Source: Ascoidea asiatica JCM 7603
Lineage: Eukaryota > Fungi > Ascomycota
Length of the DNA: 64,000 nt
Assembly (NCBI GenBank): GCA_001600695.1
Contig: BCKQ01000002.1
Location: 1,736,334 to 1,800,333 of the forward strand
Reading direction: 5' to 3'
This document shows positions 39,524 through 46,504 of the stretch, piece by piece; positions within the stretch are counted from its first letter, which is position 1, and each line of letters begins with the position of its first letter. The position numbers were made by a program, and so were the translations under genes. The notes beneath the pieces are model-generated. The model did no database searches. It was not told the origin of the DNA and saw nothing but the letters and a program-made list of their open reading frames with translations.

Positions 39524-42115
39524 ATGAATCAAAATAGACATAACAAGTACAATTCTAGAAACAATAATTCTAGTAATTTCAATAATACAGATGAAAATTT
39601 GGAATTATTCACTTTAAAAGAAGAAATTAAAATCTTTGAAGAAGATATTGAAAAATATGGTTGGAATAATTTATCTTCAAATGAAAAATCAAATTATGAA
39701 AAAAAAATTCAATTATATAATAATTTAATTAAATCTAAAAATGATTATTCAAATAAACAATCAAATGATTATATAATACCTGAAGATTATTCAAATGATA
39801 AAAAAAGAAAATATGAAATTTTAAATGATAAAAAAAACTTAGATTTTAAAATTAATAAAAAAATTTCAAATAATAATAGTAGTAGTAGTAATACCACTAA
39901 TAATAATAATAACTCAATAGATTTAAAAATTAATGATCCAAATAAAATTCCTTTACCAGGTAATGAAGATTATGAATTTGTTTTTGATGATAATCAAAAA
40001 GTTATATTTACTGAAGAAGAAAAATTATTATATGATAAAGAATCTCAAGATTTAAATTCAAAAAAATTGGAAACTGAAAATAAAATTAAAAATTTAAAAA
40101 CAATTAATGATATTAAAAAATCTTTACCAGTTTATAAATATAAAAATGATTTATTAAATTCAATAAAAATTAATCAAGTTTTAATAGTTATTGGTGAAAC
40201 TGGTTCTGGTAAAACAACTCAATTACCTCAATATATTTATGAAGAGGGTTATTGTAAAAATGGTTTAAAAATTGCTTGTACACAACCAAGAAGAGTTGCT
40301 GCTATGTCTGTTGCAAAAAGAGTTTCTGATGAAATGAATGTAACTTTAGGTAATGAAGTTGGTTATTCAATTCGTTTTGAAGATAGAACAAATAAAAAAA
40401 CTTTGATAAAATATTTAACTGATGGTATGTTACTAAGAGAATTTTTTATTGATCCAAAAATGTCATCATATTCTGTAATAATTATAGATGAAGCTCATGA
40501 AAGAACTTTATCAACAGATATTTTATTAGGTTTAATTAAAGATATTTTAAAATTTAGAAAAAATTTAAAATTAATAATTTCTTCTGCAACAATGAATGCA
40601 AAAAAATTTAGTAAATTTTTTAATAATGCACCAATATTTAATGTACCAGGTAGAAGATATCCTGTTGATATTCATTATACAATTCAACCTGAATCAAATT
40701 ATATTCATGCAGTTATCACAACTATTTTTCAAATTCATATATCTCAAGGTTTTGGTGATATTTTAGTATTTTTAACAGGTCAAGAAGAAATTGAAATTAT
40801 CGAAGAAAATATAAAAGATACCTGTAAAAAATTAGGATCAAAAATTAAAGAAATGATAATTTGTCCAATTTATGCAAATTTACCAAATGATTTACAACAA
40901 AAAATTTTTCAACCAACACCGAAAAATTCAAGAAAAATTGTATTAGCAACAAATATTGCAGAAACTTCAATTACAATTGATGGAATTGTTTATGTTATTG
41001 ATCCAGGATTTGTTAAAGAAAAAATATATAATCCTTCAACAGGTATGGATAGTTTAATAGTTACACCATGTTCACAAGCTTCATCAAATCAAAGAGCAGG
41101 TAGAGCAGGTAGAATTGGACCTGGAAAATGTTTTAGATTATTTACAAAATGGTCATTTAAAAATGAATTACCATTAAATTCAACACCAGAAATTTTAAGA
41201 ATAAATTTATCAAGTGTTGTATTAATATTATTATCATTAGGTATCACAGATTTAATAAAATTTGAATTTATTGATTCACCATCAATTGATTCATTAATAA
41301 AATCATTAGAATTATTATATTCATTAGGTAGTATAAATGAAAAAGGATTATTAACAAAATTAGGTAGACAAATGTCTGAATTTCCAACAAATCCAATGAT
41401 TTCAAAAGTTTTATTAATTAGTAAGAAATATAAATGTACAAAAGATATATTATCAATAGTTTCATTAATTCAAGAATCTTCAACCTTATTTCATAAACCA
41501 AAAGATAAAAAATTATTAGTTGAAGAAATTAGAAGTAGATTTAATAATAAATTCGGAGATCATTTTACATTATTAGAAATTTGGAATGAATGGAAAGAAA
41601 ATAATTATTCATATGAATGGTGTAAAGATACATATATACAATATAAAACATTAAGAAGAGTTAAAAATATTAGAAATCAATTAGAAAAAATATGTGAAAG
41701 AGTTGAAATTCGTGATAAAAAAAGAAATGATAAATCTTTTAATAATGAAGAAAATAATAACAATGATAATAGTATGGATATAAATGAGGAAAATAAGATT
41801 ATAAGAATAAGTAAAGCATTAACAGCAGGATTTTTCCCAAATTGTGCAAGATTATCAAAAATGGGAGATAGTTATAGAAGTTTAAAAAAAAATAATCAAA
41901 TTTTTATACATCCAAGTTCAGTTTTATTTAAAATTAAACCTGCAAATAAACTCATAATTTATAATGAATTAATTTTAACTAAAAAAGAATATATGAGGAA
42001 TTGTTTTGTTATTAAAGAAGAATGGTTAAAAGAATTAGCACCACATTATTTTTCTAAAAAGGAATTGGAAATTGCAGATACTCAAAGTAAAAAAATTCCC
42101 AAAATTATTAAATGA
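39524..42115 (+). CDS. PRP2: Spliceosomal DEAH-box helicase Prp2/DHX16
   Basis: GETGSGKTTQLPQY, TQPRRVAAMSVA, DEAH, SAT, PIYANLP, QRAGRAGR, IHPSS. Confidence 0.88.
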   Translation: MNQNRHNKYNSRNNNSSNFNNTDENLELFTLKEEIKIFEEDIEKYGWNNLSSNEKSNYEKKIQLYNNLIKSKNDYSNKQSNDYIIPEDYSNDKKRKYEILNDKKNLDFKINKKISNNNSSSSNTTNNNNNSIDLKINDPNKIPLPGNEDYEFVFDDNQKVIFTEEEKLLYDKESQDLNSKKLETENKIKNLKTINDIKKSLPVYKYKNDLLNSIKINQVLIVIGETGSGKTTQLPQYIYEEGYCKNGLKIACTQPRRVAAMSVAKRVSDEMNVTLGNEVGYSIRFEDRTNKKTLIKYLTDGMLLREFFIDPKMSSYSVIIIDEAHERTLSTDILLGLIKDILKFRKNLKLIISSATMNAKKFSKFFNNAPIFNVPGRRYPVDIHYTIQPESNYIHAVITTIFQIHISQGFGDILVFLTGQEEIEIIEENIKDTCKKLGSKIKEMIICPIYANLPNDLQQKIFQPTPKNSRKIVLATNIAETSITIDGIVYVIDPGFVKEKIYNPSTGMDSLIVTPCSQASSNQRAGRAGRIGPGKCFRLFTKWSFKNELPLNSTPEILRINLSSVVLILLSLGITDLIKFEFIDSPSIDSLIKSLELLYSLGSINEKGLLTKLGRQMSEFPTNPMISKVLLISKKYKCTKDILSIVSLIQESSTLFHKPKDKKLLVEEIRSRFNNKFGDHFTLLEIWNEWKENNYSYEWCKDTYIQYKTLRRVKNIRNQLEKICERVEIRDKKRNDKSFNNEENNNNDNSMDINEENKIIRISKALTAGFFPNCARLSKMGDSYRSLKKNNQIFIHPSSVLFKIKPANKLIIYNELILTKKEYMRNCFVIKEEWLKELAPHYFSKKELEIADTQSKKIPKIIK

Positions 42116-42855
42116 ATATTCTATTTAAAAGGAGAATATTAATTGGAAAGTAAGAAAAAAAAGAAAAGATAAAGGAGAATTATAATAAAACCGAAAAAGA
42201 ATTTAAAATGAAAAATCAAGTTATTTTTATTTTTGTCTTAATATTTCTCATATTGTCTAAGAGTCTCTATTAGATCTAGATCCAATCTTTTTATTCATTG
42301 GATTGTTGGGGTTTAATTAATTTTGGAAATATCCAAGAACTAATTCGATTAGATTGGAGTTTAACGAGGAGTTATGCCTTTAGAAATCCTCCAGTGAACT
42401 CAAAGACTCTGAACATGTCTCAGACAGGGTCTCTGGTTAATTATTTTACTGGTCCTGCTGTCTCAGCTGCTCTTTCAAAGGTTCTTTTAGCTGCTTTTCA
42501 CATAGTTCTTCCAGCAGTTCTGCCAGCACTTTCTGCTTCTTCTGCTTCTTCTGCTTCTGCTGCTGTTTTTGTTTGTGCTGCTGCTGTGGTTTGGCGGCGC
42601 GCTGCTCGATGTGGCAGTGGCAGGCGAATTAAGGTGCTGTCACGGGCCAGCCAATCAGCGGGCGAGCTGTGAGGCACCATCCACATCTGGCAGACCCACA
42701 GCTGCAATAACAACAACAATAACAAAAATAAAGCATAAAGAACAAACGATTGATCCTTTTCTGATCTTTCTCTATTTCAATCTCTTCATTATTCTGTTTT
42801 TATCTCTCTTTTTTTTTTTTTTTTTTGGATAATTCATCCATTGGTATTCATTAAA

Positions 42856-44907
42856 ATGGATCACAATGATAACAACAATAATAATAATGGAAAGCCTGGA
42901 TTCTCATCTTTTTCAAATAAGAAAAGATTTTTATCTGATCTTCCTCTGCTTCCTTCAATTCCAAAAAGAAGGTTGCTAAATAACCCTAATTCAAACTTAG
43001 ATTTGAATTTTAATTCTAATAATAATCAAGAAGTAAATAGACATACATTATATAGAAGAAATTCAAGAGATTCAATTTCTTCGAAAACCTCAAGTAGTTT
43101 ATTTTGTTCTACTGATTTATCAAGTGAATCGGTTTATAATTTTGGTAATGATATTCCAAACTATAATAATATAAATAATCTCAATAACAATATCAATAAT
43201 AATAATAATAATAATAATCATACTTATAATTCTGATAATTTCCCTTCAATTGATATCAATATAAGAAATAATAATATTAATAATCCTCCAAGTTCTCCAG
43301 TTTCTTCTTATGATATAAATCCAGATGAAACTTTAAATGATATTCAATTTAATCAATTAATATCTCCATCTTTATCAAATATCAATAACGAAAATCAAAG
43401 TAAAATTCAATTAGATTCTGATGATACGGATTTTGATATTAATTTAGATAAATATGGTAGAATTCAATCAAATTACATCAATTATAGTGATATTGAATCA
43501 ATTTCTGATGATATAAACCCAATCAATAATAATAATAATAATGACAGTAATAATATCCTATCTCAATCTCAATCTCAATCTCAATCTCAATCTCAATCTC
43601 AATTTCAAGCTTATTCTAAATCCCAGTCTTATAATCAATCTCATAGTATTCAGATGATTAATATTGATAAAGATCAAGAAAACATTCATCAAATTGTAAA
43701 AACTATAATTTCTGATGCTTTTAATAATGATTCAATAGAATTTCAAAAAAATCAAATCTTAAATTTTGATGGTTTAAATTTAATCTCAATTCCAAATGCA
43801 ATCTCAGATTTAAAAGATTTAGTTTTATTTGATAAAAATGCAAATATTATCAAACAACCAAATTTTCAACTATTTTTTCATCATAATAATTTAATTAATA
43901 TTAATCCGAGATTATTTAATATTTCAAATATTGTTGTATTAAGTTTAAGAGATAATAATTTATCTTCATTACCAGGTTCAATAAATTTATGTTCTAAGAA
44001 TTTAAAATCTTTAAATTTATCTTTAAATAATTTTAAAACTTTACCATGGCAAATTTTAGATCTTAAAAATCTTGAAACTTTATCAATTAGACCAAATTCA
44101 AAATTAATTGAATTTAAAAATTTTAAAAAAATTTTACCTTTTAAAAATTTTAGGATTATTATTGATTCAACTTTAAATAATTTTGCAATTTGTAAATTTG
44201 TTTCTTCAATAATTTTTAGTGATTTAAATTTACAAAAAAAAATTAATAAAATTAAAAAAAATGAATCAAAAACAATAAATTTACTTAAAAATTTTTATAT
44301 TTCTTCTTTTAAATCTAATAATAATAATACTTATTCAAATTCTCAAAAATTATTAATTGATGATTTAAAATATCAATTATTTTTAAAAAATAAAAAACAG
44401 AAAAAAAAAATTCAAAAAATTATTAATGAATCGATTTCTCATACTCCAAAATTATCTGAACTTTGTTTAAGAAATATAAGTAGTTATAAATTTCACTCAG
44501 ATTTTGAATATAAATCTTGGACAAAAGGTATTAATAAAGTTCATTTACAATCAGTTTCAAAAGCTTTAATTTGTGGTTCTAATAATGAAATTTGTTTTAT
44601 TTGTAAAAATGTTTTAATATATTCCGTTGCTCATGTTATTGAATGGTGGGATATTTTAGGTAATAAACTTGTGCCAATTAAAAAAAAATTTTGTTCAGGT
44701 GGTTGTATAAAAGAATATGAATCAAATAATTTCAATAGTTATTCAATGGATGATGATGCTTTTTATTTAGCGAATTTTGAAAAACAATTTGAAAAAGATA
44801 TTTCAATTAATGAAAATGATAATCCAAAATTAAATGATGATGATTTAATAGATACCGATATAGATCAAGAAATGGATGAAAATATAGGAGATATGGAGTC
44901 TTTTTGA
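42856..44907 (+). CDS. Leucine-rich-repeat protein with BC-box-like motif and C-terminal Cys4 module (LRRC58-like)
   Basis: ATG at 42856; about 5 LRRs (LSLRDNNLSSLP, LNLSLNNFKTLP); PKLSELCLRNI; CFIC...EWWD...VP...CSGGC. Confidence 0.75.
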   Translation: MDHNDNNNNNNGKPGFSSFSNKKRFLSDLPLLPSIPKRRLLNNPNSNLDLNFNSNNNQEVNRHTLYRRNSRDSISSKTSSSLFCSTDLSSESVYNFGNDIPNYNNINNLNNNINNNNNNNNHTYNSDNFPSIDINIRNNNINNPPSSPVSSYDINPDETLNDIQFNQLISPSLSNINNENQSKIQLDSDDTDFDINLDKYGRIQSNYINYSDIESISDDINPINNNNNNDSNNILSQSQSQSQSQSQSQFQAYSKSQSYNQSHSIQMINIDKDQENIHQIVKTIISDAFNNDSIEFQKNQILNFDGLNLISIPNAISDLKDLVLFDKNANIIKQPNFQLFFHHNNLININPRLFNISNIVVLSLRDNNLSSLPGSINLCSKNLKSLNLSLNNFKTLPWQILDLKNLETLSIRPNSKLIEFKNFKKILPFKNFRIIIDSTLNNFAICKFVSSIIFSDLNLQKKINKIKKNESKTINLLKNFYISSFKSNNNNTYSNSQKLLIDDLKYQLFLKNKKQKKKIQKIINESISHTPKLSELCLRNISSYKFHSDFEYKSWTKGINKVHLQSVSKALICGSNNEICFICKNVLIYSVAHVIEWWDILGNKLVPIKKKFCSGGCIKEYESNNFNSYSMDDDAFYLANFEKQFEKDISINENDNPKLNDDDLIDTDIDQEMDENIGDMESF

Positions 44908-45205: not shown

Positions 45206-46504
45206 TCAGGGTACACTGAATAAACTAAAATTTCTTACAATATTTGGACCATATTCATCATAATCTTGTTTTGTATGACAATAAGCTTTAAATTCACTTG
45301 TTTGAGCCATTAAACTACCACCAAACCATACAGCATTTCTTTGTCTTCTATGAGAAATTACTTGAACCTCAACTCCACTACTTTTTGCATGAGAAATTTG
45401 TTCAGAAGCTTCAACTCTTTTTTTAACAATATCACGAATATCTCTTTGTAATCTTCTACCAAAATCTTTAAACATTGTTGAACCACCACTTAAAACAATA
45501 TTTTTATAAAGACCTTTTCTAACATCAATTGGAGAAGATTGAATAACTTGATCAACAACAATTGGTAATGGAGTTAAAAAATCACTTGAAGCAATTTCTG
45601 GATTAAAAAAAATTTCTGGAGCTAAAAATCTTTCATAACCAACATCAACTAAACTTTTAATTGTTTTATTTTGAGATTGATAAATATATTGAGCAAATTT
45701 TTGTTTATCATGATCAAATTTTTTAAATTCTTTTACAATATCTGGACAAACATAACAGAATTGTTGTTTAATTTGTTCTGCGGTACGTAAAGAAGAATCT
45801 AATTCACCTCTTTCTCTTAACATTTGTTGAATAAATAAAGTTATATCTCTACCAGCTATTGGAATATTTTTAATTGCAGAACCAATTACATAACCTTCAG
45901 CGACAGGTATAACATGAGTTACACCATCACCAGAATCTATTACAGTTCCTGTTAAAACTCTATTTTGAACTTTTGAAGAAGTCCAAGAAGCAGCTAAAGC
46001 TAATACAGCTTGTACAGCAATATATAAACCTGCACAATTGAAACTTTCAAACATAATTTCAGCAGTATTTTCTCTATTTTCAGGAGGATTTAAAGGTGGT
46101 TCAGTTAATAAAAAATAATGATCTTCAGGTTCACATCTTAAATATTTAAAAATTGAATTTTCCCAAAATCTTTCCATATGATCCCAATTTTCAATTTGTC
46201 CATGTTTTATTGGATATGATAAAGAATATGATTGACCATTTGAAGCATTAATTGCTTCATCACCTATATAAAAATCTAAATCTTCCATACCTCTTTTTGA
46301 AGCAAGATTATTACCAGAAGAATTATTATTTAAATTTTTTTTATTTGAAGAATTTGAAGAAGATTTAGAAGCTGTTGAAGAACCTGAACGTGTTGCAATT
46401 GCTGTTGGAAATACAAAAGATGGAGCATCATTACCTGCAAACCCTAATTTTGTTAGACCTGTACCATTATCCATGATAACAGCAGGAGTTGCCAAACTTG
46501 ACAT
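45206..46504 (-). CDS. ARP3: Actin-related protein 3
   Basis: [51 protein letters not shown]. Confidence 0.98.

Follow-up and report, generated by a model that had tools for sequence, protein, structure and literature searches.

A yeast LRR protein with a BC-box-like helix and a candidate treble-clef zinc module as a possible Elongin-C-type substrate receptor in Ascoidea asiatica

The window analyzed here is a 64,000-nucleotide stretch of contig BCKQ01000002.1 from Ascoidea asiatica JCM 7603, and all coordinates refer to it. On its forward strand, at 42856..44907, lies an open reading frame of 684 codons including the stop, which runs from the first ATG to a TGA and encodes 683 amino acids. 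Its GC content is ~20%, within a very AT-rich genome, and it is a single-copy gene, a profile of the tail family described below having matched only this locus in the genome. In the encoded protein, a disordered Asn-rich N-terminus precedes an LRR domain, which is followed by a BC-box-like helix and, as the fourth part, a CxxC...FCSxxC module (Table 1). A GC-rich island upstream was considered as an RNA gene and rejected, as it contained no tRNA, gave no Rfam match and, on neither of its strands, had folding energy in excess.

Table 1 Features of the open reading frame and the evidence for each
Feature	Position in window	Strand	Evidence or remarks
Asn-rich low-complexity N-terminal region	42856..43647	+	Short conserved motifs: PLLP (42937-42957), PSSP, F.I(D/N)...R
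Long N-terminal capping helix before the LRRs (model H3-28)	43648..43725	+	AF2 block pLDDT 86-92; family consensus A...I..AFE
LRR domain, residues ~301-449	43756..44202	+	PDB LRR matches; pLDDT 92-98; invariant N344, R365, L383, N414
Lys/Asn-rich insert, residues 457-526, two long predicted helices (model H195-224, H233-264)	44224..44433	+	pLDDT 64-90
BC-box-like helix, residues 530-544	44443..44487	+	Family conservation counts; model helix 271-280
Two helices after the BC box, cullin-box position (model H287-296, H299-314)	44500..44583	+	pLDDT >90; W555 invariant, E551 conserved
Candidate FCS-type treble-clef zinc module	44593..44733	+	C580-x2-C583 knuckle, EWWD-bearing beta-hairpin (9-10 residues per strand), F-C613-S-x2-C617 at start of last helix
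Acidic C-terminal extension ending ...DMESF	44734..44904	+	C-terminal sequences of relatives compared

Residues 1-290 contain no Pfam domain and nothing of the size of a PH domain, and in the full-length family alignment, conservation ahead of the LRR cap helix is limited to short motifs. Searched against the PDB with phmmer, the LRR region retrieved LRR proteins of Leptospira (E = 1.9e-21) and SHOC2 (E = 1e-14); the Pfam LRR_8 match to the protein was sub-threshold (E = 5e-4). A preliminary description of this DNA had counted about five LRRs, which is a fair count, and the predicted structure has 6-7 LRR-type strands. The insert that follows the repeats consists mostly of gapped or poorly conserved alignment columns and lacks any consensus residue. 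At the other end of the protein, an acidic F(D/N)xxF terminus recurs in a subset of relatives, namely those from Wickerhamomyces, Saccharomycopsis and unnamed sources.

The tail of the protein proved to be a conserved C-terminal module of LRR proteins. Searched exhaustively with HMMER, this tail yielded 58 cluster representatives, and E was ≤1e-10 for 34 of these. About half of all representatives are nameless, and every named one is an uncharacterized Saccharomycotina or Pneumocystis protein. Members were found in Komagataella, Scheffersomyces, Babjeviella, Wickerhamomyces, Lipomyces and all six Pneumocystis species checked; the K. phaffii member is PAS_chr3_0497. Scheffersomyces and Babjeviella belong to the order that includes Candida. 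No Saccharomycetaceae appeared among the named members recovered, a count to be read with roughly half of the representatives nameless. That Pneumocystis has kept the family although its genomes are reduced suggests that the function is important. Word-index protein searches gave generic LRR proteins or nothing and missed family members that are 40-47% identical, so their blanks carry no meaning; a search of this kind with a Pneumocystis tail yielded Pneumocystis orthologues only and no bridge to other phyla. An Atlas feature search with the Ascoidea tail produced no usable match, and the locus tags of the orthologues were not mentioned in the literature searched.

Conservation was counted over 57 aligned tails. 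C580, C583, C613 and C617, together with W555 and E596, are present in all 57. The preliminary description had placed a Cys-bearing stretch at 44593-44706, and its boundaries correspond to C580 (44593) and C617 (44706); it had also named the conservation of these four cysteines in fungal relatives beforehand as a refuting test, and they are invariant throughout the alignment. Weak Pfam matches to treble-clef families recurred among the 57 tails: DUF7576 was matched by 21/57, zf-FCS by 7, TRASH by 4 and DUF2116 ("probable treble clef") by 3, all below gathering scores.

The BC-box pattern previously noted at 44443-44478 is likewise present, as TPKLSELCLRNI, residues 530-541. Taken as a bare pattern it is not rare, since 19% of shuffled versions of the protein contain L...C...[ILVA], and the sequence departs from the strict BC-box consensus (S/T/P/A before the Leu) because a Lys stands in that position. 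Across the aligned tails, L533 is kept in 56/57, residue 537 is C, A or S in 51/57, residue 541 is I, L or V in 52/57 and Y544 is kept in 49/57. The Leu, the small residue and the Tyr are therefore 86-98% conserved in the family, which raises the BC-box reading above chance. The L533/C537/Y544 spacing (L/+4/+11) equals that of L322/A326/Y333 in Xenopus Lrr1, residues that contact Elongin C (PMC8682755). The invariant W555 sits in the predicted helices after the BC box. Pfam identified no SOCS, VHL or F-box domain in the 57 tails.

Two metazoan substrate receptors provide the frame for these observations. LRRC58 is a CRL2/CRL5 substrate receptor for the cysteine dioxygenase CDO1 (PDB 9T7V chain B), described as comprising an LRR, a BC box, a Cul box, zinc-bound loops and a ~30 Å two-stranded sheet that acts as a C-cap (PMC13156300). 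LRR1, in CRL2-LRR1, serves CMG helicase ubiquitylation (PDB 7SHK chain L, 7PLO chain O). An AF2 model of the Ascoidea protein computed from the family MSA (pLDDT 87.4, pTM 0.83; a single-sequence model was discarded at pLDDT 37) placed its elements in the order LRR, long helical insert, BC helix, two helices, zinc knuckle, long beta-hairpin and helix. Within the zinc module, the elements were E330-338, E341-350 and H353-364, with hairpin and helix at pLDDT 95-97. The domain order LRR, BC-box helix, helices and Cys4 module, as first proposed, is thus real and conserved. Structural scores were middling, and LRR domains dominated every structure search; with Foldseek against the PDB, LRR proteins prevailed and LRR1 stood at rank 40. 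Lrr1 chains were the only solved structures aligned over both the LRR and the tail (~210-220 residues), 7shk_L having 220/282 residues aligned over model positions 7-366. Among non-fungal entries of the ESM Atlas, clusters named LRRC58 matched best over the full length, with modest TM values, one from Chordata (TM 0.46/0.54, 217 aligned, residues 11-367) and one from Arthropoda (TM 0.43/0.41, 206 aligned). The solved LRRC58 structure, 9T7V, was absent from all structure-search outputs and, by its date, was probably not in the searched copy.

Sequence comparisons of the tail gave a sparser picture. Its only PDB match was the tail of human LRR1 (E = 0.15), in register at both C-termini and not reproduced by profiles or other members; PDB searches at E≤10 with the family profiles (A1, A3) and with the single tails of three more members retrieved neither LRR1 nor LRRC58. 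By HMMER, similarity to LRRC58 was confined to the LRR region (E = 3.4e-7), the tail leaving 9t7v_B unretrieved at E≤10, and profile A2, which spans LRR and tail, was swamped by LRR proteins and uninformative. A profile match of the tail to LRRC58, expected from the preliminary description, was accordingly not significant in any HMMER sequence or profile search. Its label "LRRC58-like" holds in part: the best full-length Atlas shape matches outside fungi support it, whereas HMMER gives no link for the tail. As the full-length match among solved structures is LRR1, which has the same architecture, "LRRC58-like" is no better founded than "LRR1/LRRC58-class".

Considering these data together, we think it rather likely that the gene at 42856..44907 encodes the substrate-recognition subunit of an Elongin-C-type cullin-RING ligase of the LRRC58/LRR1 architectural class. 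Being built like the animal adaptors LRRC58 and LRR1, the protein probably targets another protein for degradation. The LRR solenoid would bind the substrate, the conserved helix 533-544 would dock into Elc1, the yeast Elongin C, and the two helices after the BC box would contact the cullin. The C-terminal CxxC...FCSxxC treble-clef finger may bind one zinc and would staple the ligase-binding helices to the long beta-hairpin capping the last LRR. Binding to Elc1 and Cul3, zinc binding and ligase function are what we infer for this protein. The genome supplies the partners: the earlier expectation of Elc1 and Cul3 without Cul2/5 was borne out in Ascoidea, where we identified an Elc1 gene and orthologues of Cul1 and Cul3, and no Cul2/5-type cullin. 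With Cul2/5 absent, the cullin partner in this species could only be Cul3.

Another account, which we regard as unlikely, takes the protein for an LRR scaffold with an FCS/TRASH-type finger, unrelated to cullin ligases. The BC-like helix would then be a buried amphipathic packing helix, and the likeness to LRR1 and LRRC58 would reflect convergence or go no further than a shared arrangement of LRR and treble clef. The lack of a significant sequence or profile match to either receptor fits this account, as do the absence of Pfam SOCS, VHL or F-box matches, the chance frequency of the BC pattern and the middling structural scores of searches dominated by LRR domains. On the other hand, the order of elements and the L/+4/+11 spacing match the Elongin C contacts described for Lrr1, and only Lrr1 and LRRC58 align over the full length. 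The invariant W555 and the conserved E551 in the would-be cullin-facing helices are also hard to explain by plain packing.

We consider it very improbable that the protein is a receptor of SCF (Cdc53) type, with an F-box-like helix cluster that would bring in Skp1 in place of Elc1. The consensus P.L.ELCLR.I..Y bears a loose resemblance to the beginning of an F-box, the Ascoidea genome encodes two Skp1 paralogues, and one of the 57 tails weakly matched PRANC, which is F-box-like (E = 0.03). However, neither the Ascoidea protein nor any of the 57 tails matched a Pfam F-box even at E 10, and a small residue at +4 together with a Tyr at +11 speaks for a BC box. Position also argues against an F-box: in LRR proteins F-boxes lie N-terminal to the LRRs, whereas in LRR1 and LRRC58 it is the VHL box that follows the LRRs on their C-terminal side.

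Slightly less probable again is a functional LRRC58 orthologue, a ligase that would respond to cysteine and degrade cysteine dioxygenase or some other sulfur enzyme, close to the inference drawn in the preliminary description. LRRC58 and CDO1 have been reported to co-evolve (PMC12589099). In agreement with this possibility, LRRC58 clusters match in shape in the Atlas, both proteins are without a PH domain, and some Mucoromycota clusters that lie near the Pneumocystis member carry the automatic name LRRC58. The C-x29-C-x3-C spacing also agrees, as it would equal that of LRRC58 in the alignment proposed in the earlier description, where the numbering of the LRRC58 tail agrees with the published mutants D317/F318/C319/L330. 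Against it, a six-frame search of the 20.3-Mb genome for cysteine dioxygenase (CDO_I, PF05995) gave no match at E 0.001 or even at E 10, which makes this enzyme an unlikely substrate in Ascoidea. In the same proposed alignment, the Ascoidea protein has Leu where LRRC58 has the sensor residue C319, and most members have a residue other than Cys there. Many members, moreover, are without an extension matching the M365/G371 end of LRRC58, and no match to the LRRC58 tail was seen at the sequence level. The proposed link to cysteine and CDO finds no support here, and Ascoidea itself is a counter-example to a correlated occurrence of the family and CDO. Least probable of all is an orthologue of LRR1 in fungi, which would act on the CMG helicase by ubiquitylation when replication terminates, in addition to SCF-Dia2 or in its place: LRR1 supplies the only solved protein aligned over LRR and tail, the only tail sequence match, an equal spacing within the BC box and a treble-clef finger, but the PH domain essential for docking of Lrr1 on CMG is absent, the distance from knuckle to FCS motif is ~8 residues shorter than in LRR1, and the literature assigns the fungal CMG role to SCF-Dia2.

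Should the protein indeed be an Elongin-C-type substrate receptor, the Elongin-C/Cul3 ligase repertoire of fungi would be extended, and the LRRC58/LRR1 receptor architecture would be older than animals. Tractable yeasts, K. phaffii among others, would open to genetics the coupling of substrate binding to the ligase through a zinc-hairpin cap. A broader scenario, which is rather improbable as a whole, is that an LRR/BC-box/treble-clef receptor is older than the divergence of fungi from animals and lives on in yeasts, where it would have switched from Cul2/5 to Cul3 and would form a third Elc1-Cul3 ligase next to those of Ela1 and Rad7. As in LRRC58, the receptor would adjust its own stability in response to a thiol or metal signal via the zinc-hairpin C-cap, and the enzyme it controls would be a sulfur or redox one, but not cysteine dioxygenase. 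If the protein is not a ligase subunit, the BC-like helix and FCS finger still form an unannotated domain family that merits a Pfam entry.

Ela1 and Rad7 are BC/SOCS-box proteins that use Elongin C and Cul3 in a budding yeast that lacks Cul2/5 and Elongin B. To our knowledge, these two, both from S. cerevisiae, are the only Elongin-C/Cul3 receptors known in budding yeast, and we know of none that is an LRR-zinc-finger protein of the LRRC58/LRR1 type, a point that weighs against the receptor reading. Rad7 has LRRs, like the Ascoidea protein, but Ela1 and Rad7 differ from it in domain order and are without the C-terminal FCS zinc finger. The FCS/MYM/TRASH treble-clef fingers (zf-FCS, TRASH, DUF2116, DUF7576) have in common with the yeast tail the CxxC...F-C-S-x-x-C ligand pattern and the knuckle-hairpin-helix topology predicted for it; they are stand-alone binders of nucleic acid, metal or protein, whereas the yeast module would cap an LRR and is fused to a BC-box-like helix.

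As judged from the model, LRR1 appears to share with the yeast protein the architecture of LRR, VHL box and C-terminal treble-clef finger, along with the same spacing of BC-box Leu, small residue and Tyr. It differs in its essential N-terminal PH domain and in its zinc knuckle, a CxCxxxC lying ~8 residues further from the FCS motif than the yeast CxxC. LRRC58, without a PH domain like the yeast protein, also has an LRR followed by a BC-box helix (L-x3-C/S/A-x3-hydrophobic), and its zinc loops and two-stranded C-cap would correspond to the four invariant Cys and the predicted hairpin and helix. The CxxC knuckle and the invariant EWW motif are features of the fungal family, the 70-residue helical insert belongs to the yeast protein, and the sensor residue C319 has no conserved counterpart. 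LRRC58 uses Cul2/5 and targets CDO1, whereas the Ascoidea genome has Cul3, no Cul2/5 and no detectable CDO gene. With its disordered N-terminus and no PH domain, the Ascoidea protein resembles LRRC58 more closely than LRR1.

The gene is present in one copy in this genome and spans 683 codons at ~20% GC, compared with 25% for the window. The LRRs, BC-box motif and Cys-rich stretch named in the preliminary description are all found where it had placed them. A phmmer search against the PDB confirms that the LRRs are genuine, with Leptospira LRR proteins (E 1.9e-21) and SHOC2 (~1e-14) as top matches and LRRC58 (9t7v_B; E 3.4e-7) and LRR1 (7plo_O; E 1.1e-5) ranked lower, via their LRRs.

Coordinates of the gene, its features and partner loci (L001–L003, loci of the same genome, G000)
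Feature	Position	Strand
Upstream neighbour, 863-aa ORF	39524-42115	
GC-rich island, 330 bp	42380-42710	
ORF of the window protein	42856-44907	plus
Disordered N-terminus	42856-43650	
Sole CTG codon (codon 31)	42946-42948	
LRRs	~43756 to 44202	
BC-box motif TPKLSELCLRNI	44443-44478	
Cys-rich stretch, C580 to C617	44593 (C580) to 44706 (C617)	
C-terminal extension	44734-44904	
Downstream neighbour, actin-related protein gene, reads like ARP3	45206-46504	minus
Elc1	L002:1288-1788	
Skp1 paralogue L001	G000:C1:832621-833124	
Skp1 paralogue L003	G000:C14, ORF 1198-1734 in locus	minus

When the 104-residue tail was run in an exhaustive HMMER search against 1.84 billion representatives, 58 proteins passed E<=0.001 and 34 also passed E<=1e-10. 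In nearly all, the match is C-terminal within a protein of 350 to 1000 aa; LRRs are the sole domain recognised by Pfam. Named members are restricted to Saccharomycotina (Pachysolen, Komagataella, Candida boidinii, Brettanomyces, Wickerhamomyces, Scheffersomyces, Babjeviella, Saccharomycopsis, Lipomyces and related genera, Nadsonia and Wickerhamiella) and Pneumocystis, and are annotated as "hypothetical" or "uncharacterized", save two automatic labels (Nadsonia "L domain-like" and Wickerhamiella "LRRC69"). Six Pneumocystis species carry a member (tail identity 69-93%; P0059, P0096-P0100); the family is kept in 6/6 species found, although their genomes are reduced.

By itself, the BC-box pattern is no better than chance: bare L...C...[ILVA] turns up in 19% of shuffled versions of the window protein, whose motif has Lys where the consensus wants S/T/P/A. 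Family conservation is what raises the BC-box-like motif above chance. In the alignment of 57 tails (A1), L533 is kept in 56/57, L538 in 53/57 and Y544 in 49/57, while position 537 is C37/A11/S3/V3 and position 541 I38/L8/V6/F3. W555, E596 and the four cysteines (C580, C583, C613 and C617) are invariant, so the loss of the latter in fungal orthologues that would have refuted the preliminary description is not seen; W597, W598 and F612 are each kept in 53/57.

AlphaFold2 gave no usable fold from the single sequence (pLDDT 37). With a 55-row LRR-plus-tail family alignment (A2) as input, residues 263-635 were modelled at pLDDT 87.4 and pTM 0.83, running from a long cap helix through 6-7 LRR strands to two long helices, which correspond to a Lys/Asn-rich insert of lower confidence. 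A helix then begins exactly at L533, followed by two more helices, a CxxC knuckle, a two-stranded hairpin (9-10 residues per strand) and a final helix starting at FCSxxC. As modelled, knuckle, hairpin and helix form a treble-clef topology, consistent with recurrent sub-threshold Pfam matches among the 57 tails: DUF7576 (21/57, best E 3.9e-4), zf-FCS (7), TRASH (4) and DUF2116, "probable treble clef" (3). Pfam F-box, SOCS and VHL models matched none of the 57.

The genome contains three Skp1_POZ loci, two Skp1-like (L001 and L003) and one Elongin C-like (L002), the last with a typical ...LELLVAADFLNV end and a ~70-residue acidic/Ser-rich N-terminal extension. The two Skp1 paralogues beside Elc1 are full-length (167 and 178 aa). 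Of four cullin-domain loci, two are strong: L004, a Cullin-1 orthologue whose best PDB matches are CUL1 (E 5e-132), and L005, a Cullin-3 orthologue whose best matches are CUL3 (E 3e-78). The other two are weak and appear Rtt101- and Apc2-like. These assignments uphold, for this genome, the earlier premise of Elc1 and Cul3 without Cul2/5.

The most likely reading, which we regard as probable, is that the window protein serves an Elc1-Cul3 ligase as its substrate receptor and has the LRRC58/LRR1 architecture. Its zinc finger would then play a structural part, fastening the helices that bind the ligase to the LRR cap. A scaffold that combines LRRs and a zinc finger outside any ligase is considerably less probable, and a variant that binds Skp1 is improbable.

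Several side observations concern the regions flanking these domains. The sole CTG codon encodes L31 within a PLLP motif that lines up with PLLP(F), a motif conserved in the family, placing CUG on a conserved Leu column at this one site, a point relevant to possible CUG reassignment. Short family-conserved motifs (PLLPF near the start, PSSPP, P.SP and F.ID...R) punctuate the disordered N-terminus, whose S-P sites are plausible candidates for phosphorylation or degron function. A family subset (Wickerhamomyces, Saccharomycopsis and unnamed; P0010, P0017, P0026, P0027, P0038, P0052 and P0054) carries an acidic extension at the C-terminus that closes with F(D/N)xxF-COOH, possibly a docking or C-terminal motif specific to a clade; the last residues of the window protein are ...DMESF. 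Directly upstream of the ORF lies an intergenic island of 32-47% GC, versus ~20-25% nearby, in which (GCT/CTT)n runs and a CCAAT-like GCCAATCAG occur. Apart from the simple repeat, the island has no second copy in the genome, and it showed no tRNA, Rfam match or excess folding energy; its minus strand holds an open frame without a start codon that resembles a Gln/Lys-rich coiled-coil end.

Cysteine dioxygenase, the substrate suggested in the preliminary description, is unlikely in this organism: a six-frame search of the 20.3-Mb genome with PF05995 found nothing at E 0.001 or E 10 (control genome positive), and, in the alignment of the preliminary description, the LRRC58 sensor residue C319 presumably corresponds to Leu in the window protein, in a column that is not Cys in most family members. 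The same two results weigh against a true, cysteine-responsive LRRC58 orthologue, a reading we rate marginally below Skp1 binding. The LRRC58 numbering of that alignment agrees with published mutants (bioRxiv 10.1101/2025.09.23.678073). Many fungal members stop a few residues past the finger, leaving M365/G371 of LRRC58 without a counterpart.

LRRC58 is described as having LRRs followed by a BC box, a Cul box, zinc-bound loops and a twisted sheet of two strands, ~30 A in size; the loop that connects the strands caps the LRRs and contacts CDO1 (PMC13156300; bioRxiv 10.1101/2025.09.23.678073). The modelled fungal hairpin fits this description. When shapes were compared across the ESM Atlas, first rank went to the Ascomycota cluster of the family itself (TM 0.64), second to a chordate cluster named LRC58 (TM 0.46 by query and 0.54 by target, with 217 residues aligned over 11-367) and fifth to an arthropod LRRC58 cluster (TM 0.43/0.41; 206 aligned, residues 14-370). 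The structure library runs to 8 April 2026; LRRC58 9T7V is in no output and probably lies outside the set, since its paper dates from May 2026. A language-model feature search with a Pneumocystis member retrieved Zoopagomycota and Mucoromycota LRR clusters (0.97-0.98), as well as two Mucoromycota clusters auto-named LRRC58 (0.93-0.94), which we treat as leads only.

The sole PDB match of the window tail was the human LRR1 tail, a weak one (E 0.15), though in register at SVAH, D.LG, PI and FCS..C. Neither LRR1 nor LRRC58 was retrieved from the PDB at E<=10 by the family tail profiles A1 and A3 or three other single tails. The proposed LRRC58 likeness thus holds in architecture and predicted structure but not in tail sequence or profile, and homology to LRR1/LRRC58 rests on the former rather than on sequence significance. 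Xenopus Lrr1 consists of PH, LRR, VHL box and C-terminal treble-clef zinc finger, and its function requires the PH domain (PMC8682755). No PH-size domain precedes the fungal LRRs, where the family keeps short motifs alone, so LRR1 identity is not supported and a CMG ligase of LRR1 type is the least probable reading. In Lrr1, the BC-box residues L322 and A326 fit into a pocket of Elongin C, with Y333 stacked on P97 of EloC (PMC8682755); L533, C/A537 and Y544 of the fungal family reproduce this L, +4, +11 spacing. On the reading held probable here, the window protein is a new, unannotated member of a known adaptor kind rather than a new kind.
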